Shown here: positions 3,176 through 61,801 of the stretch, piece by piece
Numbering within the stretch: the stretch's first letter is position 1
Layout of the letters: each line of letters begins with the position of its first letter
Virus record (IMG/VR): IMGVR_UViG_3300024308_000302
Location: 186,001-250,000 of that record
Strand: one strand, 5' to 3'
Length of the DNA stretch: 64,000 bases
The notes under the pieces: generated by a model
What the model was told of the DNA's origin: nothing
What the model saw: only the letters and a program-made list of their open reading frames with translations
Database searches by the model: none
Program-made: the position numbers and the translations under genes

Positions 3176-4018
3176 ATGAAGCATTATGAACATGTCCAAA
3201 TTTTTGAATTTGATAAGCTCAATTATGAAAGTATTGAAAACAAAATAAATGCATCAAAAATGGACATCAAGTTTGATATTGATATTTTAAAATCAATTAT
3301 GACTTCATTCAAAGAAGAATTTTTGGTATCTCAAAAAGAAGATATTTCTATATTTGTAACTATTCAAATCACTAATAAAACAAAAAAAGAAATTTATATA
3401 GAATTCGATTCAAAAGAAGTGATTGCTCCACATATATCAATAATTAAAAAGAAATATGAAATAACAAAACGTCTTGATGAATTTAAACACGAAAATCCAA
3501 AAAAAATGTTTATTGGATTCATGGATAAATTAATGGGTGAAGAAACATGTAGTTTAAGTGATAAGAATTACGAAGTTATAAGCCATGATACAAATAAAAA
3601 AATTCCTATTATTTTGAAAAATGCAAAATGGATAGAAAAACTAATAAAAAGCCCAGATAAATTATATACTTCAATTATTAAAAACGGAATTTATACACAT
3701 GAAAAAAGAGTTACTTCTGGAATGTTCCTTATTGACTATAACAAATATGTAATCAGAGTAAGGACTAAACTTAAACACGAAGTGCTAAACACAAAAGAAT
3801 CTGTATTATGTATTAAGATGGAATTATCATCACCAATATACTGTGAAATTACAATTTACGATCAAACTATTGTGATATATAAAAAGGATCTTGATAAAAT
3901 AAAGATTACTAATGTACAAAAGGCAATCTGTGCATTAATGGCAATGAAAGGTTTTGAGATAGATAGTTTTGAAGAGTTTTATGATGTATTGTTAATTGAA
4001 GAAATGAAACTTATCTAA
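3176..4018 (+). CDS. hypothetical protein, C-terminal M(-4) signature family (subgroup B)
   Basis: GAGG RBS; ends DVLLIEEMKLI; N-terminus resembles 37448..38281 and 43693..44514. Confidence 0.85.
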   Translation: MKHYEHVQIFEFDKLNYESIENKINASKMDIKFDIDILKSIMTSFKEEFLVSQKEDISIFVTIQITNKTKKEIYIEFDSKEVIAPHISIIKKKYEITKRLDEFKHENPKKMFIGFMDKLMGEETCSLSDKNYEVISHDTNKKIPIILKNAKWIEKLIKSPDKLYTSIIKNGIYTHEKRVTSGMFLIDYNKYVIRVRTKLKHEVLNTKESVLCIKMELSSPIYCEITIYDQTIVIYKKDLDKIKITNVQKAICALMAMKGFEIDSFEEFYDVLLIEEMKLI

Positions 4019-4035
4019 TTAGTTTAAACAAAAAC

Positions 4036-4064
4036 AAAAAAAAGAGCCGTGAGGCTCTTTTCTT
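4036..4064. terminator. bidirectional intrinsic terminator
   Basis: AAAAAAGAGCC-GTGA-GGCTCTTTT between convergent genes. Confidence 0.85.
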
Positions 4065-5459
4065 TTACTCTTTATCTAACAAAGTTGACATCAATCCAAT
4101 TGGTCGTCCAGTGGAACCATTATGGTCACTTGTACCAGCAATGTCTAAATGAACCCATTTTTCTTTTGGAGCAAATTCACGAAGGAAAACAGCACCATTA
4201 GTAGCACCAGCACCTTGACCTAAGCAAAGGTTATTTAAGTCTGCTACATCACTATCCAAGAAGTGTTTATAATCATCACTCAATGGAAGTCTCCATACAG
4301 TATCACCTGACTCAATGCCTGCTTCAATAAACAGTGCTGACAACTCATCATCTTCTGTAAATAAACCAGAGTGAACATGGCCAATAGCAGAAATAACAGC
4401 ACCAGTTAGCGTTGCAAAGTCAACAGTCAATGCACCATTGAATGTTTGAGCATGACAAAGAGCATCAGCAAGAACAAGACGGCCTTCTGCATCAGTATCT
4501 TCTACTTCAATAGTTTTTCCATTTTTTGCAGTAATAACATCACCCGGTTTCAAAGCACCTGCATCTGGCATATTTTCACAAGTTGCAATGATAGCAACAA
4601 CATTCTTTTTGGAATTAGTACGAATTGCATAAAGCAAAGTACCAAGAACGGTTGCAGCACCACCCATGTCACCTTTCATACGGCCCATGCCCTTCGATGG
4701 TTTGATAGAGATACCACCAGAATCAAAAGTAAGACCTTTACCAACTAAGACAATAGGATCATCACCTTCTTTGCCACCATTGTATTCAATAGTTAATAGG
4801 TGTCCTTCTTCTACTGAGCCTTTTGATACAGCATACAAAGATCCATAACCTTTTTCTTCAAGTTCTTTTCCACTTACAACAGAGACTTTAGTTTTATTAC
4901 TAAGTCCTGCAACTCGCTTGCCTTCTTCAACCAAAACAGTTGGGGTAAGATAATTTGATGGCATATCAATCAATTTCTTTTTAAGAAGAATTGCTTCTGC
5001 TAATGCAACGCCAAAAGACAGGTCTTTTTCAAAAGCTCCAATATCAGAAGAATCATTAAAAAGCAACGAAATATTTTTAGGTGTTACAGCAGTAGTGTTT
5101 GTTTTTGCTGACCAAGGAACAGAATTTTTAACAACAATAGATGATACAAGTTTTTTCATATCAATCAAATCTGAAATTACACAAATATCAGTAATATTTG
5201 ATGGTAATTTACTGATAGCGTTACCAATGGCATCTTCTACTTTTTTAGAATTTTTAGATAAGTGAACAAATGAGTAGTAAACACCAGAATAAAAAATAGA
5301 AAAATCTGATTTATCCAAATACTGGGTCAAATCTTTAGGAATATCAGGGTGAATATCAATCCCATCTTCACTAGATGAAAAAGTCGTTACAATTGCTTGT
5401 GATTTTGAAATGGCAGTAACGATTGAAACAGAAATGTTATTAAATTTATTGTCTAGCAT
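4065..5459 (-). CDS. pepA: M17 family leucyl aminopeptidase
   Basis: Motifs LVGKGLTFDSGG, MKGDMGGAA, DTDAEGRLVLAD, ATLTGA, WVHLDIAG; AGGAG RBS. Confidence 0.95.
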   Translation of the reverse strand: MLDNKFNNISVSIVTAISKSQAIVTTFSSSEDGIDIHPDIPKDLTQYLDKSDFSIFYSGVYYSFVHLSKNSKKVEDAIGNAISKLPSNITDICVISDLIDMKKLVSSIVVKNSVPWSAKTNTTAVTPKNISLLFNDSSDIGAFEKDLSFGVALAEAILLKKKLIDMPSNYLTPTVLVEEGKRVAGLSNKTKVSVVSGKELEEKGYGSLYAVSKGSVEEGHLLTIEYNGGKEGDDPIVLVGKGLTFDSGGISIKPSKGMGRMKGDMGGAATVLGTLLYAIRTNSKKNVVAIIATCENMPDAGALKPGDVITAKNGKTIEVEDTDAEGRLVLADALCHAQTFNGALTVDFATLTGAVISAIGHVHSGLFTEDDELSALFIEAGIESGDTVWRLPLSDDYKHFLDSDVADLNNLCLGQGAGATNGAVFLREFAPKEKWVHLDIAGTSDHNGSTGRPIGLMSTLLDKE

Positions 5460-5540
5460 ATAATCTCCTATAAATGCACAAGTATTCTACAGAAAAAAAA
5501 TGAAAACATCAAGAAATAAAAAACAATATAAGTGTAATTG

Positions 5541-5557: not shown

Positions 5558-5755
5558 AAAAAAACATGCATTGTCTCTTTAAAATTGACAATTATGGTTA
5601 ATATAATTCGATTGGTAATCACACCATTACTATTGAGAAAAAAGGATTTTTTTAGTGTTTACATGTATAAAAAAAAGATTATAGTGTAAAAATATACTTA
5701 TACATATTAACTAATATTGTATAAGATATTAATTCATTTAAATATAAAAGGTTTT

Positions 5756-7105: not shown

Positions 7106-7486
7106 TTAATTAATCAAGCACATTTCTTGATTTGAGAACTGTTTAGAGAAGGTTTCCAGTGTATCACCTATAATAAAACGAACACCCAATGAAGCAGATG
7201 GAGTCATAATGATAAGTAATTGAATAAGATCTGTTTCAATATGTTTCAATTCTTGTAAAGATTCTTTAGACTCTCCAAAAGATCCATATAAGCTAATAAC
7301 ACGGTTGTCTTCTACACTCTCTATATTTATTTCATTAATAAAAGCATCTCTTTCGTAATAAGAGTTAACATTATATATATAAAAATCTGATAGCTCTAAC
7401 GTCTCCTGAATATAAGTGCAAACCTCATATAATACTGCAATTTGCTTATCTCGTAACTCTGTAAATTTTGCCTCAATGAAATTCAT
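7106..7486 (-). CDS. hypothetical protein
   Basis: AGGGG RBS; 126 aa open frame. Confidence 0.75.
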   Translation of the reverse strand: MNFIEAKFTELRDKQIAVLYEVCTYIQETLELSDFYIYNVNSYYERDAFINEINIESVEDNRVISLYGSFGESKESLQELKHIETDLIQLLIIMTPSASLGVRFIIGDTLETFSKQFSNQEMCLIN

Positions 7487-8884: not shown

Positions 8885-8906
8885 AGGGAGCCGAAGCTCC
8901 CTTTTT
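8883..8906. terminator. bidirectional intrinsic terminator
   Basis: AAAGGGAGC-CGAA-GCTCCCTTT touching both convergent stop codons. Confidence 0.85.
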
Positions 8907-9882
8907 AGTACCGCATAATTTGATACAAATCAATATCTTTCATTGTCAACGATTCAACATCAGTATTGGTCTTGTCAGATATTTCATACTTCAAACGTTC
9001 AACTGTTTGATTATAAATATCATCTAAGCTTTCATAGTTTTCATGCTGCCTAAGCATGGAGTTACTTGTGAAAGAAACAGTTGTTTTAACAGCATCATCA
9101 AAAACTCTAACATGGAAATGACAAGCATTAGAGCGATAGCCATATGAAAGCTCAAATACCAAGTTGGAATCTTTTACATTGCTGATTCTGTCATTAAAAA
9201 TGATATATACGGGAGTGTCAGCATTTGGATCATCTACAATCTTAAAATAGAAATTCATCAAGCTTAGTTGTTGTTTTATTTTTGATTTCAAATCACCAGT
9301 GAATACTGTATTAACAAAATAAATCAACTCATCAAATGTATAAAAATTATGAACTGTCCGTGTAAGAACTTTAGCCATTTGAGATGGTGGAATATAATTA
9401 ATTCCAAGTTTTTTCAACTTGTCAGTAACAACTGATGTAGTTGACTGATTTAACAACATATTCAATTCTTTAAAGTTTTTTGTTTTGGGATAAATAATAT
9501 CACTCACAGTTTTCAATAGTGAAAGATAGCGAGTTTCAAGGGCAGCTTCATTTTCGATGAAAGCCTGATGTGCAATAACTGTATGTTTCCCGTTTTCCAA
9601 ATTAATCGAGCACCCCGGAAACGGTTGATAAACAATTCGGCTTGTAGAGACTTCAATATTTGATTGAAAATACTCGAAACCACTGACCTTACTATAAAGT
9701 TTAGACAATGATTCCATTTGAGACAAAGAACGCTCTGATACATCAAGAAATGGGGCCAAATAAGCATACAAATCTTTATTTGTTTTCAAAAAATATCGTT
9801 TTTCAACATTTCGATCAATGATCCCATTTTTTTTCACATAATCTTCAATGAACATGAAAACTTTAAAATATAAGTATTCCAT
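8905..9882 (-). CDS. hypothetical protein, C-terminal signature family (subgroup A; Ile at -4, Met at -3)
   Basis: GGAG RBS before the second Met; ends TDVESLTMKDIDLYQIMRY. Confidence 0.82.
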   Translation of the reverse strand: MEYLYFKVFMFIEDYVKKNGIIDRNVEKRYFLKTNKDLYAYLAPFLDVSERSLSQMESLSKLYSKVSGFEYFQSNIEVSTSRIVYQPFPGCSINLENGKHTVIAHQAFIENEAALETRYLSLLKTVSDIIYPKTKNFKELNMLLNQSTTSVVTDKLKKLGINYIPPSQMAKVLTRTVHNFYTFDELIYFVNTVFTGDLKSKIKQQLSLMNFYFKIVDDPNADTPVYIIFNDRISNVKDSNLVFELSYGYRSNACHFHVRVFDDAVKTTVSFTSNSMLRQHENYESLDDIYNQTVERLKYEISDKTNTDVESLTMKDIDLYQIMRY

Positions 9883-9894
9883 ACAATGCTCCAA

Positions 9895-10896
9895 TTAACA
9901 GGCGTACATCTGTAAAAGTAATAAGTGATTAAAGGTTAGGTCTTTAACATCTACTTCCAAGTGGTCACTAACATAACCAGAGAACTGCTCTAATATATAC
10001 AGATAAATTTCATCAAACGAGCTAACATATGGTTCACAATTGTCAAAAGAAAATTCAATATGGTCATCAGAAAAAATAATCTCAAAACCGAAATGTACTG
10101 GGCTTTCATGAATTACCATCTTAAATAAATAATTACTATTCAAATACTTATTAAAAGATAGAGACGAACAAAATTTCATATTGATTGGTATATTCAAATT
10201 CAAAATCTTTTCAATGAACTTAACAAGTTCTATGATCTGATTAAATCTGGCATAATCAGTATCCGTTAAATAATTATACAGTATATCTAAAGATTCATCT
10301 AAGGCAATAACATTGTTAGTTGTGACATGCTTTCCAACCATGTCCAACAAATGAATGCCATTATAGCACAAATACCTTTTGCGAACAACATCCCAACTGG
10401 ATAATGGCAAAATATCTGTGATACTTTTAAAGGTAAAAATTGAAGAATGTAGACTACTTTTTATTTTTGATAGCAATTCATTATATTTGTTTTCAAACAA
10501 TTTATTATTGTTGACAAGAGAAGAAATATGAAATTCAGTACCAGCTAAATAAATTGTTACATTCTTTTTAAAATAGACATATCTTACTTTTATGTAAAAA
10601 TTGGGTTCCAATAATGATATAGATGCATAATTATCAAGCCAACGAACAGAAGCTGAATCTTTTCTTTTGTTATTAATTAAGTTATAGAAATAAATAAGAG
10701 AATATAACTGCATAATTAAATGATGATTAACATTAATCAAGTTTCCAACATACATTGCCATAGAAGGATTCATATCAAATGAGAATCCATTATAAGCAGA
10801 AGTAAATTTGCATTCAGGAATTATTTCAGGAAGGCGATGGATTACATCACTATCAATGATAGGTGGATGAATAAAATTATCAGACATAGTATCCAT
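9895..10896 (-). CDS. hypothetical protein, C-terminal M(-4) family (subgroup A)
   Basis: AGGAG RBS; ends LEVDVKDLTFNHLLLLQMYAC. Confidence 0.85.
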   Translation of the reverse strand: MDTMSDNFIHPPIIDSDVIHRLPEIIPECKFTSAYNGFSFDMNPSMAMYVGNLINVNHHLIMQLYSLIYFYNLINNKRKDSASVRWLDNYASISLLEPNFYIKVRYVYFKKNVTIYLAGTEFHISSLVNNNKLFENKYNELLSKIKSSLHSSIFTFKSITDILPLSSWDVVRKRYLCYNGIHLLDMVGKHVTTNNVIALDESLDILYNYLTDTDYARFNQIIELVKFIEKILNLNIPINMKFCSSLSFNKYLNSNYLFKMVIHESPVHFGFEIIFSDDHIEFSFDNCEPYVSSFDEIYLYILEQFSGYVSDHLEVDVKDLTFNHLLLLQMYAC

Positions 10897-13622: not shown

Positions 13623-13682
13623 GGGATAACTCCTAAAATTTGACAAATTATACCACAACGAGCCATAAAATGAAAGTTTTTA

Positions 13683-14774
13683 TTATAAAATTAACATTTC
13701 ATGTATTTTTAAGTCTGGTAATCTGAAATCATCTCGATGCATTTGAAAAGTCTTCTCCAGTCTCAAAATAAGATTTTCTTTTAAATGGTCATAGATAGAA
13801 TCTAAATCAGTTAGAACAATTTGATTTATTGGATCATAAAATTCTATTGTTCCATCATCAAAAAGTAAAATAGATTCTCGACAATCTAAATTTAAATTAA
13901 CTCCAAAATGAAACTGATAAAACTGATTCAATTCTGCATATTTTGATGTTTTATTGAACGTTATACTAAAATGGTTAGAAACACACTCGCTCCATTTAAT
14001 ATCTCTTTTGAAAAATGTTTCTTGAAAAGACGTTAAAGCAACAATGTTTTTTAATTTTTTTGCAAATGATTCTGAGAAACTATCTTTTAAAAAGGAATTG
14101 AAAGTTTTTAAATCTACAGTAACAGTATGTTGTCCAAGATTCATGCAGTTTATAAAAATACTTGAATCGTCAACTTGGTAACGTTTAATGAAGTCTGTTA
14201 ACGATACAATTTTCAGATCGGTGTTAATTAAACGACTGTTTATAAAATTCACATTAGACATTTTATTAATTTCAAAAAAATGTTTAAAGGTCTTAACATT
14301 TGAATTAAGTGCTTTCTTTATATCTGATAAAATTTCATTATATGCGACCTCATAATCATTAGTATAAACCATAAGAGAATACGCCATTTCAAATGATAAA
14401 TTTAAATTAGAATTTTGTTTTTTACATTGACTATAAAGTGTTAAAAAGTAATAGTAATCATGATCAAAAATCTCAAATAAAGAAAATTCAAAACTTAAAC
14501 AATCACCATTATAAACCAGATTAATATAAACATCTAAGTTTTCAAGCCCTTGTATCAAAGCTAAAAAACTATTGGCAAAAATATATTGATTAATTAATGA
14601 TGAATTAGATTTTGTTAAATTAGAAATAAATTGTATTACAATAGGATTTGAATAAACAGAATAATAAAAATGTTTTCTACCACCACGTATAATTTCTTGT
14701 TCAATTAACGGTAATTCGTGTTTAGAAACTAAATCTTTGAACTGACATATAATATCATTTTCGATGCCTGTCAT
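13683..14774 (-). CDS. hypothetical protein, C-terminal M(-4) family (subgroup A)
   Basis: AAGGA RBS; ends FQMHRDDFRLPDLKIHEMLIL. Confidence 0.85.
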   Translation of the reverse strand: MTGIENDIICQFKDLVSKHELPLIEQEIIRGGRKHFYYSVYSNPIVIQFISNLTKSNSSLINQYIFANSFLALIQGLENLDVYINLVYNGDCLSFEFSLFEIFDHDYYYFLTLYSQCKKQNSNLNLSFEMAYSLMVYTNDYEVAYNEILSDIKKALNSNVKTFKHFFEINKMSNVNFINSRLINTDLKIVSLTDFIKRYQVDDSSIFINCMNLGQHTVTVDLKTFNSFLKDSFSESFAKKLKNIVALTSFQETFFKRDIKWSECVSNHFSITFNKTSKYAELNQFYQFHFGVNLNLDCRESILLFDDGTIEFYDPINQIVLTDLDSIYDHLKENLILRLEKTFQMHRDDFRLPDLKIHEMLIL

Positions 14775-14786
14775 AATTAATCCTTA

Positions 14787-20390: not shown

Positions 20391-20409
20391 AAGAGGTCGA
20401 AACCTCTTT
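20389..20409. terminator. GAGGC-family variant terminator
   Basis: AAAAGAGGT-CGAA-ACCTCTTT (compensatory C>T/G>A change) between convergent stops. Confidence 0.85.
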
Positions 20410-21403
20410 AGTATTCAATCATTTCTTGGACTAACAACCTATCGTCCCATTTATTAACATCAAATTGTTCTGGATGGTAAGCTGATGGAATATAAAGTTC
20501 TGGTAATACTTCAGACCATTTGGCATAGTTATAGCCTACATATTTCAGAAGTTCGTATAAACCTTGTTTCAATGAGCTTTTATTATATGATTTATTAAAA
20601 GACTCTTTAGACCACCCATTAAAATTAACTAAAATAACTAAATTTTCATTTTCTAAAGTCATTTTTACAATAGTCTGATTATAACAATTAATTAAACAAA
20701 CTTTCGTATTAAGAATAGAATAGTCATCATTAAAATAAACTTCAATTTTATATGTAAGCAACATGCCTTCACCGCCATCAAAGATTGTTCTAAACAAACG
20801 TTTGTTATCATCATCAATATTAAGATTAAATGAGATTACAAAACTAGTATTATTAGCGATGAGCCGTTTGTTATTAAAAATGCCAAAACCAGCATCGAAA
20901 TCTACATTATTAAGAATTGCTGAGCAGACTTCTTCCTTATCAGATTTTGATACGTTAAAATAATCAAAGGTAATACTCAAATTATCAGAAATCAATTTTC
21001 TATTGGATTCGTTTAGCATAAAAGCTTTTTTGTGATTTTTAATTATAAGTTCATTAGTAGCAATATCAAAATCTTTATCACGCATATCATAGACTGAAAA
21101 ACCATTATTCTCATATAAAACATATACAAATCTTTTCTTTTTTTTCAAAGAATTCACAATATAATAGTTTGCCTGTATCGTTCTTTTAGATCTTTCAAAA
21201 ACTTTTTCTTGATCAATGCTATCTTTAATTTTTGAACAATCAAAAATATTTGGCAACATAACAATAATGTGTTTACCAACATACCAGTTTAATTCATCTA
21301 TTGTTTTAAAATTTTTAACAAAGGTTGCATAGTCTCTAAACATGATATGATCTCTAATAAAAATTAACATTATTATACCAATATACAAAGGGAATAACAA
21401 CAA
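20408..21403 (-). CDS. hypothetical protein, C-terminal M(-4) family (subgroup C; start may be 21343)
   Basis: Ends LPELYIPSAYHPEQFDVNKWDDRLLVQEMIEY. Confidence 0.8.
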   Translation of the reverse strand: MLLFPLYIGIIMLIFIRDHIMFRDYATFVKNFKTIDELNWYVGKHIIVMLPNIFDCSKIKDSIDQEKVFERSKRTIQANYYIVNSLKKKKRFVYVLYENNGFSVYDMRDKDFDIATNELIIKNHKKAFMLNESNRKLISDNLSITFDYFNVSKSDKEEVCSAILNNVDFDAGFGIFNNKRLIANNTSFVISFNLNIDDDNKRLFRTIFDGGEGMLLTYKIEVYFNDDYSILNTKVCLINCYNQTIVKMTLENENLVILVNFNGWSKESFNKSYNKSSLKQGLYELLKYVGYNYAKWSEVLPELYIPSAYHPEQFDVNKWDDRLLVQEMIEY

Positions 21404-21876: not shown

Positions 21877-22932
21877 TTAATAAGTCATCATCATAAACAA
21901 ATCAACATCTTTAATAGTTATTTTAGAACTATCTATGCCAAGTTTATTACTTAATAATTCAGTAATTAATGTCAGATAATGATCATATATATCATTTAAT
22001 GTATCTAAATAAACAGGAATATATAATAGTGGATTAGAATAATAAAATGTCCCATCAGAAAATAACTCTAAACTTATATGTGGATGAGATTTATAAGTAA
22101 GAATAAATTGTCTATTATAAGATTGAAATTTTAATGGTTTAACAAAACATATATCAATAAAATCAGCTTTTTTATTATGTTCGAGATTATAATAAAATTG
22201 CATTATTGATAATACTTGATTAAATTCTTTAAAAGTTTCCTTTGGTAAGAAATTTTTAACAATACTTGAAAATTGATAGTATTGAAGACGATAAAAATGA
22301 TCATTATTGAATTCATTAACTCGTTCAAGTATTTTATACTCATCTGGAATACAAGTATGTGCCATATAAGACATGCCAGATTTCTTTATTTCTTCACTCA
22401 TCAAGTAATATGATTCATTTTTTACATAATGCATCAATGATTTCATATCTTTAATATTAGGATTTAGTTTAGATTTAATGCTATTAAATGAGTATTCATA
22501 TGCAGCATCAAAATTAAAAGAATCAGAAAATTGTTTGTGGCTATTAGTCAAAAACAGTTCATAATTAGAAACACTATTATTATTGATTGATAAGTTAACG
22601 ATATCTATTCTATTGTTTCTATACATGTTATTAGAAATAAGATAAAAAATTGAATGTTTAGAAATACCAATTCTCACTTTAATAACAGTTGGCAAATCTC
22701 GCATGAGATAAACTAGTTGATTTAAGGAGACAAACTGTTTAAGAAAGCTTTTAGGTATATTGATTATTTCGTATAAATGATTGACAACATCATCGTTAAA
22801 ATCCAAAAGGAATTCTTGATTCTCTGTTGAGGAATTAACAATGACTAATTTATCTTTAGACAACTGTAGTTCTATCAATTTCTTAGCACTATCTACAATA
22901 TCATCAAATAATGCTATTTTATAATCAGACAT
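21877..22932 (-). CDS. hypothetical protein, C-terminal M(-4) family (subgroup A)
   Basis: AGGAG RBS; ends LGIDSSKITIKDVDLFMMMTY. Confidence 0.85.
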   Translation of the reverse strand: MSDYKIALFDDIVDSAKKLIELQLSKDKLVIVNSSTENQEFLLDFNDDVVNHLYEIINIPKSFLKQFVSLNQLVYLMRDLPTVIKVRIGISKHSIFYLISNNMYRNNRIDIVNLSINNNSVSNYELFLTNSHKQFSDSFNFDAAYEYSFNSIKSKLNPNIKDMKSLMHYVKNESYYLMSEEIKKSGMSYMAHTCIPDEYKILERVNEFNNDHFYRLQYYQFSSIVKNFLPKETFKEFNQVLSIMQFYYNLEHNKKADFIDICFVKPLKFQSYNRQFILTYKSHPHISLELFSDGTFYYSNPLLYIPVYLDTLNDIYDHYLTLITELLSNKLGIDSSKITIKDVDLFMMMTY

Positions 22933-22954: not shown

Positions 22955-23512
22955 TTATTCTAATATAAGTTTTTGAATGTCATAAGAATTTGGATATGTT
23001 TTAAAATCAAGTTGATGACCATGCATAAAAGTAAAATTATAAGTTTCAACCATTAATGAGGTGACATTATAATTTTTATCTCGTTGAATAATAATATCCT
23101 TATAAACTTCTTCATCATCAGCAAGATTAGGTTTTTTAGGGCCTACAGTTATTTGATGAGAAATTTGTTCTATACGACCTTTTTTATGTATAAAGTAAAC
23201 ATGCTCTTTTAACGTTGAGTCATCTGCAACATTATAATTGCTAAAAGATCCTAAATTATCGACCTTAACTTTAATGGAATCGAGACTCATTCGATAACTA
23301 CTTGCAATAACTTGTTTAGTTTTTTTGTTATAAAATTGATAACCGCCAAACAAATGAATTTTTATGGCATAGTCTTTATAATCAAAAGTATCAACATTAT
23401 AGAGTTTATTAAGCAAAAAGCAGGTTTCTTTCTTTAAACGGTCAAGAGAATACATATGACGTTTAGTCCACATCATTGGTATGAATAAAGTGTTTAAAAT
23501 AGGTATCAGCAT
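22955..23512 (-). CDS. hypothetical protein
   Basis: GGAG RBS; 185 aa. Confidence 0.75.
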   Translation of the reverse strand: MLIPILNTLFIPMMWTKRHMYSLDRLKKETCFLLNKLYNVDTFDYKDYAIKIHLFGGYQFYNKKTKQVIASSYRMSLDSIKVKVDNLGSFSNYNVADDSTLKEHVYFIHKKGRIEQISHQITVGPKKPNLADDEEVYKDIIIQRDKNYNVTSLMVETYNFTFMHGHQLDFKTYPNSYDIQKLILE

Positions 23513-27328: not shown

Positions 27329-27988
27329 TCAAACTTTAGTCATCTGCAAAATAATATGATCTTTCAATCTGATGTCATTTAAATTTATGTTAAGTGGTTG
27401 GCAAGCAAATTCAATTAAAAATGTATCAATCATATGTTGTAGTGATAGATAAGTATAAATATCTTTTCCAATATAAGCAAGGAATCGATGAGACAACACA
27501 ACTTTATTATTTGAAATATCAAAAAAGAACCTGATATAAATTCCTATATGCATTTCACTGACAAAAGCATTAATGGGGTCTAATCGATTAGGCGTACCTA
27601 TTATTTTTTTTCTAATATATTTATTATAATTATTATCTGATGTATATTTTGTATTCTGAAATAAGAAACAGTTTAAAAATAGAAGCTTATTATCAATGTC
27701 ATGAATAGCAGTTTTAATATCAAGTTCGAGAGATTGTGTTAACGGAATATTAAAAATATCCTGAACAACATCAAAATCAACATCAGAAATAAAATCTATC
27801 ATGTAATCATCACCAGACTTAATGATTTCAAACCTACAGTGCTCATGTAATGAATCAAAGATCATAAAAAAGACAGGAATCTTATTTGGTGAATCATCAG
27901 TAACAATAGACATCGTATAGTCTTGACGATTATATTCAAGGTTTTTAAATTTTTCTTTTAATGCCTCTAACACCTTAAAATTTTTCAT
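27329..27988 (-). CDS. hypothetical protein, C-terminal M(-4) family (subgroup A)
   Basis: Overlaps the upstream stop; ends LNINLNDIRLKDHIILQMTKV. Confidence 0.8.
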   Translation of the reverse strand: MKNFKVLEALKEKFKNLEYNRQDYTMSIVTDDSPNKIPVFFMIFDSLHEHCRFEIIKSGDDYMIDFISDVDFDVVQDIFNIPLTQSLELDIKTAIHDIDNKLLFLNCFLFQNTKYTSDNNYNKYIRKKIIGTPNRLDPINAFVSEMHIGIYIRFFFDISNNKVVLSHRFLAYIGKDIYTYLSLQHMIDTFLIEFACQPLNINLNDIRLKDHIILQMTKV

Positions 27989-33679: not shown

Positions 33680-34711
33680 TTAAATATAAGCCATTTGATA
33701 TAATTCTAAATGTTCTTTCGTAAAGTCTTCAAGTTTGATACCAAGATCTGATAACAAGCCATCCCTGTAAAGGGCTAACAGATAATCATACAATGAATTC
33801 AAATTATTAAATTTTACAGTATTAAACTTTCCATCAGTGTCATGATAAGTTAATATGTATTTCTCAGGATCTTCAATAATACTAATAGAAATATATTTGC
33901 TATCACTCCAGACACTCGATGAATTGAAGTCATGAAAACATATTGAATATATAGAATGAGTAAAATGTTTGTTATTTGCAAATATTTTATTTAAATTATC
34001 AGTTTCAAAATCAAAGTTAAAATAAGTTCCATTAAGTGATTTATTCAAAGCTACTGCAGAAAAATTAATTAAAGAAAATATTTGATTAAATATACGACAG
34101 TCATCTGAAGGAAAAATTTTAGCAGTGATACTTGTCATTTCATTATAGTTAAGTGGATTAGAAGTATCAATTGAGAAGTCTTTCAAACACTCTTCTTTTG
34201 TGTACATATTCATATTTAAAGATTTAATACGTTCATCAAATAAAACATATCTATCCATACAACGAATTCGATTCAAATCTTTAAGGGTTTTAATTGTCGG
34301 ATGAAAAGTAATTAATTCAAGCGAAAATTGATAAATATTTTCAAATGTAGACTTCTCACTATATGAACGAACATGCCAACCATCAGCCAAAGTAAAAAGA
34401 ATACTTAATTCAAGCGTGATATCTATAAGAATGTGATTTTCAAAAATAAAAAGTTCACTTTTTTGATTGAATTTTTGAGGAATAGGGGCTTCTGATTCTA
34501 TATAATGCTTGAATTGAACCAAAGCGTGCTGTTGAAGCATAGAAGATGCTGATAACCCAGTTAAATCTTTAAGATAATAAGCAAATTCTTTATTAAAATT
34601 GAAAGAATAATAATCATACTTATCATAAATTAAAGAATGCTCAAAATCATTTTTGGATGATCCAATAAATATTTTCAATTTTTCGTAAATATCATAAATA
34701 AATTGATTCAT
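33680..34711 (-). CDS. hypothetical protein, C-terminal M(-4) family (subgroup A)
   Basis: GGAGG RBS; ends LGIKLEDFTKEHLELYQMAYI. Confidence 0.85.
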   Translation of the reverse strand: MNQFIYDIYEKLKIFIGSSKNDFEHSLIYDKYDYYSFNFNKEFAYYLKDLTGLSASSMLQQHALVQFKHYIESEAPIPQKFNQKSELFIFENHILIDITLELSILFTLADGWHVRSYSEKSTFENIYQFSLELITFHPTIKTLKDLNRIRCMDRYVLFDERIKSLNMNMYTKEECLKDFSIDTSNPLNYNEMTSITAKIFPSDDCRIFNQIFSLINFSAVALNKSLNGTYFNFDFETDNLNKIFANNKHFTHSIYSICFHDFNSSSVWSDSKYISISIIEDPEKYILTYHDTDGKFNTVKFNNLNSLYDYLLALYRDGLLSDLGIKLEDFTKEHLELYQMAYI

Positions 34712-35510: not shown

Positions 35511-36155
35511 ATGATAGAAATTAAAGATATTGCAAGCTTGAAAGAAGCATTAACTACAGACAGTCAATCAGGTCTGTTTGTTAAGCCTTTGAAAGAATTT
35601 ATTAAAGAAGGTATTGTAATGGATTCTGGAACTAGACCAGAGTATCGATATCCATTAGATGAAGATGCTAATGAAATATTATTATTCCAAGTGAAAAAAT
35701 CTGTTATTACATTCAAAAGTTATATGAAAAAAATAAATGAAAATTATCAATATCATAGATCAAATGACTTACCAGCTACTATCACATACAACGATAATGG
35801 GTATCCTTTTTTTTATCAATGGTTTATTGAAGGATATAAATGTAGAGACAACGTAATGAAACCAATCACTGTTGAAAACAATGGTGATGAATTCTGGCAT
35901 TTCAAATACCAATATGATATCAGTGAAACACATCTACTTGCAGTCGCAAATATTACATATATTCATTCTAAACGACAAGATAAGCTAAGAGATATAGCTA
36001 TTGAGTGTAATGGAACATATATAGATTATAATTTAGAAAAAGCAAAAAGAATGGTGCCAGAAATTGATGACATTAAATTTGAAGATTGCTTTGATTTAAG
36101 TAAAAATATATTCACCGAAGATTATATTACAGTAATTGAAATGGCAAACATATAA
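35511..36155 (+). CDS. hypothetical protein, C-terminal M(-4) family
   Basis: AAGG RBS; ends LSKNIFTEDYITVIEMANI. Confidence 0.82.
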   Translation: MIEIKDIASLKEALTTDSQSGLFVKPLKEFIKEGIVMDSGTRPEYRYPLDEDANEILLFQVKKSVITFKSYMKKINENYQYHRSNDLPATITYNDNGYPFFYQWFIEGYKCRDNVMKPITVENNGDEFWHFKYQYDISETHLLAVANITYIHSKRQDKLRDIAIECNGTYIDYNLEKAKRMVPEIDDIKFEDCFDLSKNIFTEDYITVIEMANI

Positions 36156-37425: not shown

Positions 37426-37449
37426 AAAGAGGCTAGAAAGCCTCTTTTT
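37426..37449. terminator. GAGGC-family bidirectional terminator
   Basis: AAAGAGGC-TAGAAA-GCCTCTTTTT between convergent stops. Confidence 0.82.
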
Positions 37450-38281
37450 AAATGTTTTTCATTTCTTCTATTATTAAAAAATCTTTAAGTTCTGCAATGG
37501 AATTAACATTGACATTGTTTATTTTGAACATTGAAAATATAAGATTTCGAAAAGCACAAAAATCAGATTGAATAAATTCATCATAAGGAATAGTGAGTGA
37601 TTGATTATAAACAAATATATTACACGTAATATAATATTCGTTATATTGAATATGTTCTTTAACTCTAAATGAAAGAATAGTATCTTTAGCATTATTATTC
37701 ATTTTAGCTTTGCTATCAAATCTAATTTCAGCAACAGAAAAAGTTATTTCGAATTCATCATAAGGATCTTTAAATACTTCACCATATAAGCCATAATCAT
37801 ATATTGATTTAAATATAAATCCTTCAAACTCAAAAATGTTATCTATTTGCTTTAGTGCATGCAATAATTTACCAGAATTTAAAAAACAATAATTTCTGTA
37901 ATAGTTATTAGATGATGATGCTTCTAAATAATCAACCATAAACATACGAAAAATGTCTATGGCTGATTTACCATCAATAAAAAGATCTTGTATGTATATA
38001 TTAATAGTTATGATGCTAGGAACTAACTTTAAATGACGAAATAAAGAATGCTCTTGTTCAAATGAAATATATAATCTACCATCATTAACTTCAAAAGTAA
38101 CACGAATAGAAAAATCATCCTTGTAAACAATCTTAGACTCATCTTGGACAATTTTAAAAAGGTCAATAATTTTATCAGAATTTACAATTTCTAAATTTTG
38201 AATTGAATTAATATATTTAACAACTGCATCACAATTAACAGTATGCAGTTTAAATAATGAAGTTGATTCAATATATTTCAT
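37448..38281 (-). CDS. hypothetical protein, C-terminal M(-4) family (subgroup B)
   Basis: Starts MKYIESTSLF; ends NVNSIAELKDFLIIEEMKNI. Confidence 0.85.
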   Translation of the reverse strand: MKYIESTSLFKLHTVNCDAVVKYINSIQNLEIVNSDKIIDLFKIVQDESKIVYKDDFSIRVTFEVNDGRLYISFEQEHSLFRHLKLVPSIITINIYIQDLFIDGKSAIDIFRMFMVDYLEASSSNNYYRNYCFLNSGKLLHALKQIDNIFEFEGFIFKSIYDYGLYGEVFKDPYDEFEITFSVAEIRFDSKAKMNNNAKDTILSFRVKEHIQYNEYYITCNIFVYNQSLTIPYDEFIQSDFCAFRNLIFSMFKINNVNVNSIAELKDFLIIEEMKNI

Positions 38282-40255: not shown

Positions 40256-41017
40256 TCAAATACAAATCATTTGTAACAACTCAATTTTTTGCTCAATACT
40301 CATATCATCAAAATCACTACATTTACTACCATGTGTAGAAATAATAAGCTCATCAATAACAGATTCAATATTATAATTGAAATCTTTGTCCACGTCTACA
40401 ATTTTGTTTGCGGCCCAAAAATCTTCTTCAAATAAAGTTTCATTTTTAACTAAATAAGCCTTTTTATTTTTTAAATTAAATGCAACCTTAAATTCTTGCT
40501 CTTTTTTAGAAAAAATTGTAATAAATGGAATACAAACAATATCATTTTGTTTATTAAACTTAAAAGATATATAAATACGACAGTTCGCCTTAAAACCATC
40601 AATAAAAGAATTAATAATAAAAAAATCATAAAGAACAAATTCAGTAGTCTTATTGAAAGAATTATTATACAAAACACAATCAGAGTTGAACTTTTCAAGA
40701 GACTGAAAAGTTTGTTTAAATATATTATGTTGATTTAATGAATTTAAAAAAAGATCTATAGTTTGAAAAGAATGTTTATAATTATTCATATCAAAAAGAT
40801 TTCTTATTTCAGATTCATTATCATTAGGGCCAGACACCCCAATTATGTACCCAGAATTATGAGAAATTGTCATAGATAAATCTTCTCTACCAGAAGAATT
40901 AAAAGCCCTTAAAATACAATGCGAAGGGCCATTATTCAAAGAAAGTTCACTATCAGGGTAATGCCTTGAAAAAAATAAGTTAGCTTGTGCTAAAATAGAA
41001 GATTGATTATTTGGCAT
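40256..41017 (-). CDS. hypothetical protein, C-terminal M(-4) family
   Basis: AGGTG RBS; ends CSDFDDMSIEQKIELLQMICI. Confidence 0.82.
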   Translation of the reverse strand: MPNNQSSILAQANLFFSRHYPDSELSLNNGPSHCILRAFNSSGREDLSMTISHNSGYIIGVSGPNDNESEIRNLFDMNNYKHSFQTIDLFLNSLNQHNIFKQTFQSLEKFNSDCVLYNNSFNKTTEFVLYDFFIINSFIDGFKANCRIYISFKFNKQNDIVCIPFITIFSKKEQEFKVAFNLKNKKAYLVKNETLFEEDFWAANKIVDVDKDFNYNIESVIDELIISTHGSKCSDFDDMSIEQKIELLQMICI

Positions 41018-42900: not shown

Positions 42901-43671
42901 TTAAATATACATCATTTTAAAAACAGTAATGTCATCATCTACCATATCATCAATCTTTTTGCCTAACACTGGTAAAGTATATTCAACTTCCATGAAGTCC
43001 TTCAGTTTAGAAGCAAATTTATTATCTGGTGTTTTTAACACTTTTCTTACAAAGTTGATTCGTCTATATTCTACTTTTTCATTAAAAGTAAAAGAGTAAT
43101 AGATAACATATTTAAATACATCAGAAAATATGACACTACCTCTTTTTTGTACAGAATGACGTAATGTATTGTTTACATCCAACATATCACCAAGCAATTT
43201 ATTGTAGAAGTCAACGACTTTCAAATCTACATCAGTATAGGTATTAACACTATATGACTGTTTAAATGAATCTTTCAAATAAATATCACTAATGTCTATT
43301 TCTAAGTCTCGTGGCAATCCATTATTGTAGATTGTAAATGCAGCCGTTAGTAATAAAGTCTCACCAGTAGGCTCAATTGTCGCTTCATAGACAACAGAAA
43401 GAGAGTCAAGACCTGTAGACCAAATACTGGTATTTACAAATAATTCTTTGTAAAAAATGTTATGACGATTATCAAATAGATCGTCTAGGTGTTCATATTT
43501 ATCTACTGGAACAATATTTTTGAGTTGTTCTTTATTAAGTGTTGATAGGTTTTCAATAAATATATTTTCTTTTTTCAGGCGAACAATTGCATTATCAAAT
43601 ATTTCTTTTTTCGTTTTAGAAATATATGTACCTAATGTATTAAAATTAGTAAATTTTTGATTTTTAGTCAT
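42901..43671 (-). CDS. hypothetical protein, C-terminal M(-4) family (subgroup A)
   Basis: Ends LGKKIDDMVDDDITVFKMMYI. Confidence 0.83.
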   Translation of the reverse strand: MTKNQKFTNFNTLGTYISKTKKEIFDNAIVRLKKENIFIENLSTLNKEQLKNIVPVDKYEHLDDLFDNRHNIFYKELFVNTSIWSTGLDSLSVVYEATIEPTGETLLLTAAFTIYNNGLPRDLEIDISDIYLKDSFKQSYSVNTYTDVDLKVVDFYNKLLGDMLDVNNTLRHSVQKRGSVIFSDVFKYVIYYSFTFNEKVEYRRINFVRKVLKTPDNKFASKLKDFMEVEYTLPVLGKKIDDMVDDDITVFKMMYI

Positions 43672-43692: not shown

Positions 43693-44514
43693 TTAAATGT
43701 CCATCATTTCTTGTAATGTAAATTCATTTTTCAAATCAGAAATATTTGAAATGTTCATTTTTTTAAGTTTAAGGACAGATACAATTGCAGTTTCAATTAA
43801 TTCATTATCTGCTGACATGAACTCATCATATGTCAACATAAGTTCTTGTCCATACATATAGAAATATAAAGCATATTTTTCAGGTACATGAATATCATTT
43901 GCTGGATTAAAAAGAAATTTAATAGAAAATGTATTATTACTGAGCTTAAAAATAGATGAAGAATATTCAACTTCAAATAAATCAATAATTTTTTTTGATT
44001 CTTCTGGATAAAATTTGTTACTAACAACTGTATTGAATAAACTATCATTTAAAATTAAAAGAGAATCAATTTTTTTGATTGCTGATAAAATACAATTAAA
44101 ATTTGCTTTTGAATAATGGTTTTTAATGTCGCCATAAATAAAACCAATATAATGTCTACAAAATTCATTAAAAAGATATTCTCCTGAAAGTTTTCCTTTT
44201 CGTGAGTCATAAAATGTAACATTAAAAAAATCATAATCTGTATGCTCATTATTAATTTGTGGCAATAGTTTGCCATCTGTCTCAAAAAGAATATTTAAAG
44301 ATGGGTCAAGATTGCCAGAAATTTCAAAAATAATTGTTACAGGAAAATCAACTTTGTTACTCACAAGCGATTCAGACTTAAGAAGAGTCAAAAATTCAGC
44401 TAGAATATCTAAATCAATAGTAAATTTTTTCTTAGACTCTGTATTTTTTTTACCAAGTGCTACATAATTGATTTTATCAATATTAAACAGTGTTGTTTTT
44501 TCGATATATTTCAT
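43693..44514 (-). CDS. hypothetical protein, C-terminal M(-4) family (subgroup B; start refined to MKYIEK)
   Basis: GGA RBS; ends MNISNISDLKNEFTLQEMMDI. Confidence 0.83.
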   Translation of the reverse strand: MKYIEKTTLFNIDKINYVALGKKNTESKKKFTIDLDILAEFLTLLKSESLVSNKVDFPVTIIFEISGNLDPSLNILFETDGKLLPQINNEHTDYDFFNVTFYDSRKGKLSGEYLFNEFCRHYIGFIYGDIKNHYSKANFNCILSAIKKIDSLLILNDSLFNTVVSNKFYPEESKKIIDLFEVEYSSSIFKLSNNTFSIKFLFNPANDIHVPEKYALYFYMYGQELMLTYDEFMSADNELIETAIVSVLKLKKMNISNISDLKNEFTLQEMMDI

Positions 44515-44570
44515 AAATAGTCCACAGATAATTTCTTCGTATATTACCAAAAAAGAATTAATAAATCAAT

Positions 44571-56021: not shown

Positions 56022-56177
56022 AAGAGGCCGAAGCCTCTTATGTTTTTGGCAGTTTCTCCGAATATTCACGCTTCTTCTAAGAAGTGGTGACACCCAAATA
56101 ACCGTCCAAGGTACATCATTTTTTGTTCTTGTTGCGACTGTCAAACTTACCAAAGCATGGAAGCCCGAAATCCTTTC
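56022..56177. repeat. direct repeat copy 2
   Basis: Native 3' end, 3' UTR and GAGGC terminator (56018..56039) of the ligase gene. Confidence 0.95.
56046..56109 (-). ncRNA. candidate structured 3' UTR: 64-nt rod-like hairpin (second copy 53225..53288)
   Basis: UUGG-A-CGGUU/AACUG-CCAA closes UUUGGGUG/UAUUCGGA, UCAC/GUGA and CUUCU-UAGA-AGAAG; the G-U pairs form only on the sense strand. Confidence 0.4.
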
Positions 56178-56911: not shown

Positions 56912-57559
56912 TCAAATAATTAACATCCTGAGTGTAATTAGATTATTTTCAAATTCACTAGTATTAATACGATAAGCACCATCAAAGTACCATTCTGGAA
57001 ACAATTCCTTTGTAATTTCTTTATCATCATTGAGAAATACTTCAAGAAGCCTAAATTCATCATCTAATGGACAAAGCATATTACGATGCTTAGTAACGTT
57101 CAAAACAATATCTTGACTTGATTTTGATTTAAGATAATGAAGCGATTGATATTCAAAGTTGCTATCATATGAAATTGAGATTTTGTAACCTAACATGCCA
57201 GATTTAGAGCATCTTTTTACAATCGTATAAGATAAATCGACATTTGATATAATACCATTATTGTCAGTAGTAACTATACAATTACTTCCAAAAACAATAT
57301 TACTATTAAGCTGTTTTAAAAAATGAGAAATAGGCAATATCGGACTTAAACCAGTTAGCTCGATTTTTTGATTGTTGTAGGCATAAAACTTATCAAAATT
57401 TTTGATATTCTGTTGTTCGCTCATAAAAGAACTGTCAAATTTATTGAATACCAATCGTGCAATATTGCTTACAAAAGATTGAGCTTGTTTCTTTTTTTTC
57501 ATAGCTGCATCATAGTTTTCTTGATAAACACTATAATTTGATTTTAAGGTAGGCGTCAT
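56912..57559 (-). CDS. hypothetical protein, C-terminal M(-4) family (subgroup C)
   Basis: AAGG RBS; ends FPEWYFDGAYRINTSEFENNLITLRMLII. Confidence 0.82.
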   Translation of the reverse strand: MTPTLKSNYSVYQENYDAAMKKKKQAQSFVSNIARLVFNKFDSSFMSEQQNIKNFDKFYAYNNQKIELTGLSPILPISHFLKQLNSNIVFGSNCIVTTDNNGIISNVDLSYTIVKRCSKSGMLGYKISISYDSNFEYQSLHYLKSKSSQDIVLNVTKHRNMLCPLDDEFRLLEVFLNDDKEITKELFPEWYFDGAYRINTSEFENNLITLRMLII

Positions 57560-59503: not shown

Positions 59504-59515
59504 ATAATATAACAT

Positions 59516-60559
59516 TTAAAATCTTGCCATTTTTAAAATTTCAAAATCTTTAATATTGATTTCTTCTGCTGCAATATCCAAATTTTTCTTAAAAATCTCA
59601 GCAATATCATCCCTAAGAGCCTTATGAATATTATCAACACCATCAAAAGAGATTGTTTTAAAATTATGTGATGATCTAATATCAATTTTTCTATAAGAAA
59701 TAAAATGATTTTCAGTAGTAACAACAAAAAATCTATGAAAATCCGATGGAGTATCTTCAATATTTATAGTATAACAATCATAATGGTCTTTAAATTTATT
59801 AGGATCAATCTCTAAAGTAATAAATCCTTTCAATGAATTAAATTCTTGTTTACTACCTGTCAAATTTATATAAAAAGCCAATGGATAAAATACTGAAACA
59901 ATATCATCTAATTTAGACTTTGAAAAAAATGGACTTAAAGCTTTTCTTATTGATTTTGGATGCAAATCAAATTTAATCGAATTTGAACCATCATTTGTTT
60001 CAATATATTTACTTTTTAATTCATCTTCACTCATGTAAACAAAAGAATTATCAGGAATTTTTGATGTAATAATATCTACATAATCCAAAGCCAATTTATC
60101 AATAAATTCTTTTAAAGTAATATTTTTTGGCATAATATCTTGTAATTTTCTTAAAAGTTCTGAATAGCACTTATCATAAGCAGAACCAGCCAACATTTCA
60201 CTAAAGGTATATCTATTATTAAAGAGATCAATATAAATATTTTCAAGGGTCTGATTTTTTCTAATAGCAAATTTAAGATCCCCAAAGAAAAAAACTAATT
60301 TATCTATATAAAACCCAACACAAACTTTATCTGCTTTTTTTTGAAGATCCCCATAAAGAACAGATGAACGAAGATCTGACAAATTTTTTAATTGATCAAA
60401 TTTTCGATAATCAATTTTAAACATTTCATCAAGAAATATAAAAGTATTTGCATCTGCTTCGAACATATAGACATCAGAATTTATACTGGAAGATTTCATT
60501 TTTGAGAAATCATAAAGTTCATGAAGACGTTCTTTTTTTTGAGTCATAAGATCTGTCAC
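59516..60559 (-). CDS. hypothetical protein, C-terminal M(-4) family (subgroup A; GTG start), tandem paralog of 60710..61801
   Basis: GGAGG RBS before GTG; RLHELYDF, IDYRKFDQLKNL; ends LDIAAEEINIKDFEILKMARF. Confidence 0.83.
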   Translation of the reverse strand: MTDLMTQKKERLHELYDFSKMKSSSINSDVYMFEADANTFIFLDEMFKIDYRKFDQLKNLSDLRSSVLYGDLQKKADKVCVGFYIDKLVFFFGDLKFAIRKNQTLENIYIDLFNNRYTFSEMLAGSAYDKCYSELLRKLQDIMPKNITLKEFIDKLALDYVDIITSKIPDNSFVYMSEDELKSKYIETNDGSNSIKFDLHPKSIRKALSPFFSKSKLDDIVSVFYPLAFYINLTGSKQEFNSLKGFITLEIDPNKFKDHYDCYTINIEDTPSDFHRFFVVTTENHFISYRKIDIRSSHNFKTISFDGVDNIHKALRDDIAEIFKKNLDIAAEEINIKDFEILKMARF

Positions 60560-60660
60560 AAGTGTACCTCCAAATATCCAAATATAAAATGAATTTAAAC
60601 TTTGAGCTATGATTATATCAATATAGGGAAAAATTTGCAATATTTATTCAGAGAATAAAA

Positions 60661-60682
60661 AATACCACTCGAAAGTGGCATC
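60661..60682 (-). terminator. intrinsic terminator
   Basis: ACCACT-CGAA-AGTGG with a left A-tract. Confidence 0.6.
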
Positions 60683-60709
60683 TTATGTAAATTATGTAAC
60701 TGAAGAACA

Positions 60710-61801
60710 TTAGAAACTAATCATAGTAATCAGTTCAATATCTTGATTACTAATATCTTGCTGTTCAATGTTTAATTTCTCCTTAAACACATTGGCAATA
60801 TCCTTTTTAAGTTCATTGTATACAGCATCAATACCTTTAATTTTAGTTACCTCATAACTTTGAGTAGCAATATTGATGCGATCTCTATGATTAGTATTAT
60901 AAGAAATAAAATAATCATCAGTAGTAATACCAATAGATCGATATTTCATAATATTGGAGAAATGCATAGTTTCAGGCATATCAATACCCATAAAGTAACA
61001 ATCATGATGTCTACTAAATTTATTTATACCATTCAAAGGTCCAATATAACCATGAAGTTCCTCAAACTTACCAGATGGATTATCAACAAGAGATAAAAAC
61101 GCAAAATGAGAAAGCACAAATACTATATGATTTAATTTGTCTGTCGGGAAAAACGGTTTCAATGCTTGTCTAATTTCTGCTGGTTTCAACCCAAATTTTC
61201 TAATAGCAGTAGCCATATTAGAATCATCATAATCATCAGAAACATTAGAATATTTTTCAATAAATTCTTCATTATCAACATATACAAAAGCATTATCAGT
61301 AATAGAAGCATTAATAATGTCTTTGGGAGAAGATTTATTTTTAAAATTAAATTCGGCTAATGTGATATCAGATGGTAATAGGGAATTCAATTCTTCCAGT
61401 TTTTTTTGATAGTATTCTTCATAAGCTGAATTATCAATAAAAGAATTAAATGAAAAGAAAGTTTCATGTATACCAATTTTTGCATTTTCAATTTTTTGGC
61501 CACGATTAATATGAAACTTAATGTTACAGTTAAATTTTAATGTACCAGAATCAATAGCAACAATACAAGAAACTGATTTATCTATATCATGATTCCTAAT
61601 ATGCATTATAAGATTATTTAAATTTTTAATTTGATCAAGTTTCCTATAATCCAACGTAAAGAACTCATTTAAAAAAATAATAGATCGCTCATCATTCTCA
61701 AAAAAATAAAAAGTTGTACTACCAATACATTTAGTTTTTGCTGAATCAAAATCATACAGTTCACGAAGACGTGTTTCCATGAGTTGCATTACATCAATCA
61801 T
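60710..61801 (-). CDS. hypothetical protein, C-terminal M(-4) family (subgroup A)
   Basis: GAGGA RBS; RLRELYDF, LDYRKLDQIKNL; ends LNIEQQDISNQDIELITMISF. Confidence 0.85.
   Translation of the reverse strand: MIDVMQLMETRLRELYDFDSAKTKCIGSTTFYFFENDERSIIFLNEFFTLDYRKLDQIKNLNNLIMHIRNHDIDKSVSCIVAIDSGTLKFNCNIKFHINRGQKIENAKIGIHETFFSFNSFIDNSAYEEYYQKKLEELNSLLPSDITLAEFNFKNKSSPKDIINASITDNAFVYVDNEEFIEKYSNVSDDYDDSNMATAIRKFGLKPAEIRQALKPFFPTDKLNHIVFVLSHFAFLSLVDNPSGKFEELHGYIGPLNGINKFSRHHDCYFMGIDMPETMHFSNIMKYRSIGITTDDYFISYNTNHRDRINIATQSYEVTKIKGIDAVYNELKKDIANVFKEKLNIEQQDISNQDIELITMISF

Follow-up and report, generated by a model that had tools for sequence, protein, structure and literature searches.

The stretch of DNA considered here, a window of 64,000 nucleotides from the IMG/VR record IMGVR_UViG_3300024308_000302, encodes 17 divergent open reading frames (ORFs) whose products share one C-terminal signature, hereafter the tail, with Met at position -4 (the last residue being -1). 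About one gene in five of the window is a member of this undescribed protein family, whose chains end three residues past the conserved Met. All 17 ORFs lie where the initial annotation of this DNA had placed them, with the last ten residues that it had read. Across the 84 non-nested ORFs of at least 60 residues in the window, Met occupies -4 in 16 against 1.7 expected (binomial p = 2e-11), and no other position among the last 12 carries more than five. The nine-residue pattern phi-x-[ILVT]-x-x-M-x-x-phi closes 15 of the C-termini and is found at 16 of approximately 18,000 internal positions, a rate from which 0.075 C-terminal matches would be expected (p ~ 1e-29); this excess is far above chance even if the members represent only about eight independent lineages. 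The comparison of C-termini with internal positions, which had been proposed as a check, shows within the window that the pattern is strongly enriched at C-termini.

At the DNA level, conservation within the tail is confined to codon positions 1 and 2, the wobble bases being variable, the stop codons that follow vary as well (TAA, TGA), and the DNA beyond the stop is unrelated among members. Selection therefore acts on the peptide, as had been claimed, and the signature is tied to the C-terminus and held across lineages that have no other detectable similarity. The three upstream variants distinguished earlier are present roughly as described, but are better viewed as a single consensus of about 22 residues: L(-21) [DNEG] I/V(-19) [DE] x x [ED](-15) I/L T x [KDN] [DHS] L/I(-9) x L/I/V(-7) Y/L [EQK] M(-4) x x phi(-1). 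The aligned signature spans about 22 residues in all members and about 45 in most. Hydrophobic residues take six of the last nine positions and are distributed around the helix that they would form, and T(-13)...D(-10) and D(-18)...E(-15) are compatible with helix capping boxes.

The bodies that carry this tail fall into several groups (Table 1). Iterative hidden Markov model (HMM) searches with the last 50 residues removed join the seven members of family A with each other and likewise the three of family B, by which 10 of the 17 ORFs are assigned to two families of full-length paralogs. Family C unites its two members in the window with two ORFs of a relative (hhalign over 180-196 columns, P = 9e-6 to 1e-4), and family D links one ORF to a 209-residue ORF of the relative (hhalign, P = 9e-5); profiles tie these three further ORFs to relatives along their whole length, and four have no family placement. 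The earlier impression that the bodies match only within small subgroups understates this kinship, and a picture of 17 independent bodies does not hold. In composition, the tail proteins are acidic and soluble, with no signal peptide and no membrane-length hydrophobic segment (maximal 19-residue hydropathy 0.4-1.5).

Table 1. Tail-bearing ORFs of the window and two related ORFs, with coordinates in the window.
Assignment	Coordinates	Strand	C-terminal residues	Remarks
Family A	8905..9894	-	DIDLYQIMRY	two-module, ~325 residues; Ile at -4
Family A	9895..10896	-	HLLLLQMYAC	
Family A	13683..14774	-	DLKIHEMLIL	
Family A	21877..22932	-	DVDLFMMMTY	AlphaFold-modelled; last helix residues 340-350
Family A	33680..34711	-	HLELYQMAYI	
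Family A	59516..60640	-	DFEILKMARF	
Family A	60710..61801	-	DIELITMISF	
Family B	3176..4018	+	VLLIEEMKLI	280 residues
Family B	37448..38281	-	FLIIEEMKNI	second AlphaFold model; last helix residues 262-275, pLDDT 91-92
Family B	43693..44550	-	EFTLQEMMDI	no ortholog in relative
Family C	20408..21403	-	RLLVQEMIEY	PExYxxxAY variant
Family C	56912..57559	-	NLITLRMLII	
Family D	30699..31343	-	TISLIEMIFV	homolog of the 209-residue ORF 35106-35735 of related contig
Unplaced	27329..27988	-	DHIILQMTKV	weak similarity, limited to family A C-terminus
Unplaced	35511..36155	+	YITVIEMANI	
Unplaced	40256..41017	-	KIELLQMICI	
Unplaced	42901..43671	-	DITVFKMMYI	
Tail-less 18th relative	22955..23512	-		matches the relative's tail-bearing 240-residue ORF (E = 4e-40)
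Possible +1 variant	7106..7486	-	QEMCLIN	126 residues; Met at -5; no ortholog in relative

A syntenic relative, of which 68 kb is assembled (Logan SRR20950787_814), keeps the tail in 14 orthologs and has additional members. Between it and the window genome the median ortholog identity is 53% for tail genes versus 71% for other genes (p = 0.005), and tail genes have been both gained and lost between relatives. The tail-less ORF of Table 1 and its ortholog, which are 69% identical between the window genome and the relative, end about 45 residues before the end of the relative's tail-bearing homolog; with such a conserved paralog lacking the last ~45 residues, the end-piece is therefore separable from the remainder of the protein. 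Two further ORFs may lie at the margin of the family. The 126-residue ORF of Table 1 may be a one-residue-extended or decaying member, and the 197-residue ORF at 34837-35430 may be a remnant, with a 32-residue piece 47% identical to the family A member at 8905.

An exhaustive search of 1.84 billion representative sequences with the family A HMM recovered 49 clusters, of which about 42 are full length (316-407 residues), and each of these ends at the last position of the profile. Across 95 collected proteins, 91 stop exactly three residues past the Met or Ile, four run on by a single residue and none by more; C-terminal extension, which the initial annotation had named as an outcome contrary to its proposal, is thus confined to single residues in 4 of 95, and the chain end is nearly fixed. 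In the 91 distinct proteins the residue at -4 is Met in 81 and Ile in 10. The members fall into size classes of about 200-280 and about 320-400 residues. No known family was matched: Pfam yields no domain for any of the 17 ORFs (E <= 0.1), PHROGs and PADLOC return no match for 10 and 8 representative tail proteins, respectively, NCBIfam has nothing for the tail proteins among the members and neighbours tested, and 50,697 phage records give neither a megablast match for the window nor a tblastn match for one family A member. Conversely, none of the approximately 26 Pfam-annotated proteins of the sampled loci carries the tail.

In terms of structure, an AlphaFold model of the family A member at 21877, built from a 10-sequence alignment (predicted local distance difference test, pLDDT, 80; predicted template modelling score 0.69), displays the same order of elements twice. 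In its second copy, strands in 258-309 precede a long helix at 312-331, which a short capped loop connects to the tail helix (pLDDT 81). This repetition is recovered from the alignment of family A (56 sequences), in which residues 13-170 align with 192-347 (hhalign, P = 2.8e-6, probability 88%) and the tail helix of module 2 falls on an internal helix, 160-170, of module 1. Family A is a tandem duplication of an alpha/beta module of about 165 residues. A second model, of the family B member at 37448, has in its C-terminal half an element order equal to that of family A, namely a beta-meander at 170-232, a helix at 241-254, a loop and the terminal helix, which is the most confident part of the model. 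Given the pLDDT of the tail helix in both families and its position in a hairpin, the tail is therefore predicted to be a folded end-piece of approximately 22-45 residues, the second helix of a hairpin that follows a beta-meander, and not a loose peptide. The free C-terminal peptide of the initial annotation accordingly gives way to a confidently predicted last helix of a hairpin with an internal homolog in module 1. By the same two features, half of another outcome named there as contrary to the proposal, full-length homologs with this helix buried in the core, has materialized. Foldseek searches of PDB and BFVD with both models gave nothing significant (best E = 0.004-0.2, template modelling score <= 0.2), the weak matches to PUR/Whirly, SpoIIAB, CapZ and a prenyltransferase being below significance.

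The genomic setting differs from that implied by the source record. The window corresponds to positions 454,255-518,254 of a 1,539,155-bp contig from the Joint Genome Institute (3300024308, Ga0247725_1000001), and the 290-kb 'viral genome' of IMG/VR (UViG_3300024308_000302), in which the window spans positions 186,001-250,000, is a cut-out of the same contig, at about 268,255-558,411. This contig recurs in a second metagenome with equal size and a different start and strand, the 20.8 kb that were compared being identical, which points to a closed, probably circular genome. The guanine-plus-cytosine (GC) content of this DNA is approximately 29%, GGAG-type Shine-Dalgarno sequences precede 51 of the 84 starts, and hairpin-plus-T terminators are common. 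The window encodes a bacterial-type UMP kinase (pyrH; 304 bits versus a cut-off of 244), as well as a leucyl aminopeptidase (pepA) and CreA. The pyrH gene stands at 28864-29568, alone amid unrecognisable genes. Its identity to the relative's copy is 97%, but GTDB yields 546 matches, spread over many phyla, of which the best reach only 50-55%. A scan of the GTDB species representatives with a lineage-specific protein gave no match, and IMG/VR holds no further contig of the lineage besides this record. The right edge of the 290-kb region marks a switch from unrecognisable genes to Pfam-rich metabolic genes, with HMG-CoA reductase, UbiA, a PEP-utilising enzyme and an AMP-binding enzyme just past it. 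In a more distant relative, a family member lies between two aminoacyl-tRNA synthetase genes on a 1.9-Mb contig. PHROG matches were obtained for 5 of the 50 window proteins tested, none of them to a capsid, portal, terminase or tail protein, and a 633-residue protein has one weak tblastn match, to an uncultured 642-kb phage. We conclude that this DNA belongs to a small bacterial chromosome, as an island whose genes are mostly unrecognisable, and is not a free phage, the 290-kb 'virus' probably being a mis-called chromosomal island. The DNA sampled for the gene-content statements made here amounts to about 190 kb, comprising about 90 kb of this genome (about 6% of the 1.54-Mb contig), about 70 kb of the close relative and one 21-kb locus from each of two more; the PHROG negatives apply to the 50 window proteins tested, and about 180 kb of the 290-kb island lies outside the DNA sampled.

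Taken together, we tentatively favor a reading, in itself falling a little short of probable, in which the tail acts only in cis as a structural cap. The 17 ORFs would represent one large, fast-diverging, lineage-specific superfamily, whose products are acidic, soluble and free of signal peptides; its genes would lie within a 290-kb island of unrecognisable genes in an uncultured, low-GC bacterium with a genome of 1.5-1.9 Mb. The signature would be the last helix of a C-terminal end-piece, formed by a long helix, a capped loop and a short, mostly hydrophobic terminal helix, which would close an alpha/beta module consisting of a beta-meander followed by the helical hairpin. It would be inherited by descent as the remaining protein diverges beyond recognition, and it would be kept by the packing of the hydrophobic residues at -9, -7, -6, -4, -3 and -1 on the preceding helix and the sheet. 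The Met at -4 probably packs on an aromatic side chain conserved in the long helix; in family A, Y316 and M348 show almost no variation. In this sense, the most fitting description of the signature is the last helix of a conserved C-terminal hairpin in a new and much expanded bacterial superfamily.

Several observations weigh against this reading. First, no profile links were found among families A, B, C and D, even with family A enlarged to 56 sequences; neither a search with the enlarged HMM nor its profile-profile comparison by hhalign detects B, C, D or the four unplaced ORFs (P = 0.03-0.3), and an HMM of the family A tail gives no significant cross-family signal beyond families C and D. 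Common descent of all tail-bearing families is therefore plausible, not established. Second, we infer burial of the tail helix from model confidence, the six hydrophobic positions of the last nine and the capping-box pattern, and the N-terminal half of the family B model is poor. Third, in module 1 the fold accepts a continuing chain after the equivalent helix, and a conserved paralog exists without the end-piece; folding alone therefore leaves the exact stop (91 of 95 proteins) unexplained. Fourth, the tail exceeds the body in identity between the window genome and the relative (66% versus 54%, p = 0.001), and Met is kept in 81 of 91 proteins despite a genome of 29% GC.

These observations lead to the alternative of recognition in trans, in which the end-piece would serve as a constant signal for docking or export that brings variable, fast-evolving proteins to one receptor, such as a type I ATP-binding cassette (ABC) transporter, a type IV coupling protein or another hub, with the free chain end contributing to recognition. 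This is possible, though on balance we consider it unlikely. It would offer a reason for the fixed chain end (91 exact, four with one extra residue, about 42 full-length database matches ending with the profile) and for the retention of the Met, and it accords with the tail being the sole element common to families without other detectable similarity, with its separability in the tail-less paralog, with the acidic nature of the proteins and their lack of signal peptides and membrane segments, with their low ortholog identity and with their gain and loss between relatives. The pattern also loosely resembles known signals, for example those of Dot/Icm substrates (PMC3052360). However, the models place the tail helix with confidence within the fold and do not show it as a disordered peptide, and it has an internal homolog in module 1. 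Moreover, precomputed Pfam matches reveal no transporter, coupling-protein or other secretion gene in the ~190 kb sampled, nor was any receptor or machine for the tail found in that DNA; no member has RTX repeats or a known effector-type domain, and -5 is acidic in just 31 of 91 proteins. That the end-piece should be a sharp, consensus-type export or docking signal for a dedicated machine, in a small-genome bacterial lineage without a GTDB species representative, is likewise conceivable if doubtful. Of the core idea of the initial annotation, a shared docking or targeting code, what survives is a real, C-terminal, protein-selected signature held across lineages; its phage framing, independent bodies and free peptide are not supported.

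A further alternative is that the terminal helix serves as an inter-subunit latch, by which members presumed to have a single module would pair with themselves or with paralogs, thereby rebuilding the two-module arrangement of family A. The internal duplication in family A, the two size classes of the members, the hydrophobic character of the tail helix over most of its surface and the presence of the tail in all families could each be accommodated in this manner, but family B may itself hold two modules, and we regard such a latch as improbable.

That the tail serves a giant prophage in virion loading or injection is much less probable still. The listing of the 290-kb region as a viral genome by IMG/VR, the weak match of the 633-residue protein to an uncultured 642-kb phage and matches to a phage RNA ligase-like protein and a methyltransferase speak in its favor. 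Against it stand the PHROG results, in which no capsid, portal, terminase or tail protein appears, the bacterial-type pyrH, pepA and creA inside the region, the tail gene between aminoacyl-tRNA synthetase genes in the distant relative, and the lack of a DNA or family A match among the 50,697 phage records. The proposal in the initial annotation of an element-encoded machine for loading virions thus loses its premise of a phage, given a 1.54-Mb contig with these bacterial genes and no structural PHROG match. Finally, that the signature arose by chance or as a DNA- or RNA-level signal at gene ends, to which a GC-rich hairpin and T run (a terminator hairpin) within a few bases 3' of 8 of the 17 tail genes might point, is already refuted by the p-value of ~1e-29 against the internal rate, by the variable wobble bases and stop codons, by the unrelated downstream DNA and by the retention of the tail in orthologs and in the 49 database clusters.

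As for the terminators themselves, the hairpin and T run lie directly downstream of the tail genes at 3176-4018, 8905, 20408, 21877, 35511-36155, 37448, 42901 and 59516, and many tail genes would therefore close a transcription unit. An alternative genetic code was considered and ruled out: the standard code accounts for the long uninterrupted ORFs and for the tails that stop immediately at TGA. A second multigene family (9-464, 572-1231, 1297-1908, 2007-2678, 5717-6109, 6137-6523 and 41096-41623) has an N-terminal signal peptide, a conserved YxAKIPLEVxNGGxLPxNSI motif and then variable bodies; three of its members end in NAIGVxxxM-like tails. A pair of genes coding for proteins of about 630 and about 480 residues is duplicated (25023-26924 with 23584-25026, and 46086-47972 with 44593-46089; 46% and 33% identity), both pairs lying near tail genes, and the 630-residue family occurs as two tandem copies beside the tail gene in the relative with the 1.9-Mb contig (L096). 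It has a conserved C-terminal region rich in Cys, Ser, Trp and His and no match in Pfam, PHROGs, PADLOC or PDB. We considered these pairs as possible partners of the tail proteins and rejected them, since they yielded no function and their closeness to tail genes carries no significance given how common the latter are. The segment 6596-8884 (creA, the 126-residue ORF and a 418-residue ORF) is matched in the relative L010, at 13638-15169, by a WHH/colicin-DNase toxin gene with a small downstream ORF instead, and appears to be a variable slot with polymorphic-toxin content. Between tail genes, at 56116-56769 and 58454-59404, lie an RNA ligase (RLIG1 / phrog_14301, E = 5e-47) and a DEDDh-type exonuclease.

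If the cautious reading of a cap in cis holds, these proteins constitute a new, very large superfamily with a new, duplicated alpha/beta module, which occupies a large part of a 290-kb island; the bacterium that carries it is uncultured and has a mostly unrecognisable genome, and a 290-kb 'virus' of IMG/VR is probably such a mis-called chromosomal island. Recognition of the tail in trans would instead make it an unusually explicit targeting code that gives direct access to a cargo list and to the biology of an undescribed lineage, which probably lives in association with hosts or prey. Were it indeed an export or docking signal, the cargo set, possibly 4-5% of genes, could be listed by a simple pattern, which is impossible for type IV effectors with their loose signals. 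In either case, the tail provides a cheap marker of the family and of the lineage in metagenomes.

The tail also invites comparison with several known C-terminal systems. Architectures of the LPXTG or PEP-CTERM sorting type do not apply to the tail proteins, which have neither a signal peptide nor a membrane-length hydrophobic segment. Possible likenesses of the tail to ESX C-terminal signals, to the peptide by which the RB69 polymerase binds its clamp and to helix 1 with its loop in acyl carrier protein were considered and set aside. The cargo-loading peptides of encapsulins, the helix-turn-helix of the P22 scaffolding protein and the capsid-targeting sequence of T4, which is N-terminal and cleaved off, are short terminal elements that load diverse proteins into a shell. 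The tail proteins depart from these in their setting, with no shell, capsid or phage structural gene among 50 window proteins.

Likenesses are also found among secretion signals. Those of type I proteases and lipases have hydrophobic last residues after an acidic one and require a free end (PMC2642768). In type I substrates such as AprA, PrtG and TliA, the signal occupies the last ~50 residues and is not cleaved, and these proteins are acidic and devoid of a Sec signal. The tail proteins are likewise acidic and without a Sec signal, and a putative signal role would fit the position of the tail and its hydrophobic extreme end, which is exact in 91 of 95 proteins, with an acidic -5 in only 31 of 91. 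However, the GGxGxD (RTX) repeats usual in these substrates occur in none of 103 tail proteins, the dedicated ABC transporter, membrane-fusion and outer-membrane factor families, whose genes usually lie next to the substrate's, are absent from the ~190 kb sampled, and the tail here is predicted as a packed helix. In Dot/Icm substrates, a hydrophobic residue at -3 or -4 is combined with an acidic E-block, which lies about 10-17 residues before the C-terminus (PMC3052360). They, like the tail proteins, are many, fast-evolving and without a Sec signal, and both have a hydrophobic -3/-4 preceded by acidic residues at a distance of 10-20 positions from the chain end: in the tails, Met or Ile is at -4 in 91 of 91, and Asp or Glu is at -15 in 47, at -18 in 41 and at -20 in 35 of the 91. 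This match in features goes no further than resemblance. The signals of Dot/Icm substrates have a loose, compositional character and are for the most part unstructured, whereas the tail consensus is sharp and predicted to be helical (pLDDT 81-92), which argues against a flexible signal, and no dot/icm genes were seen in the sampled DNA.

A last parallel comes from eukaryotic and viral systems. In poxvirus ankyrin-PRANC/F-box proteins and in SOCS-box proteins, a C-terminal helical element of about 40 residues docks variable bodies on one hub. These hubs are parts of eukaryotic ubiquitin ligases, the tail proteins differ in having no repeat-type body, and none of the 17 ORFs matches the F-box, PRANC or SOCS models of Pfam at E <= 0.1. 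The likeness lies rather in the organization of the families, both sets being large groups of paralogs subject to turnover, with a constant helical element at the C-terminus and with some paralogs that are devoid of it.

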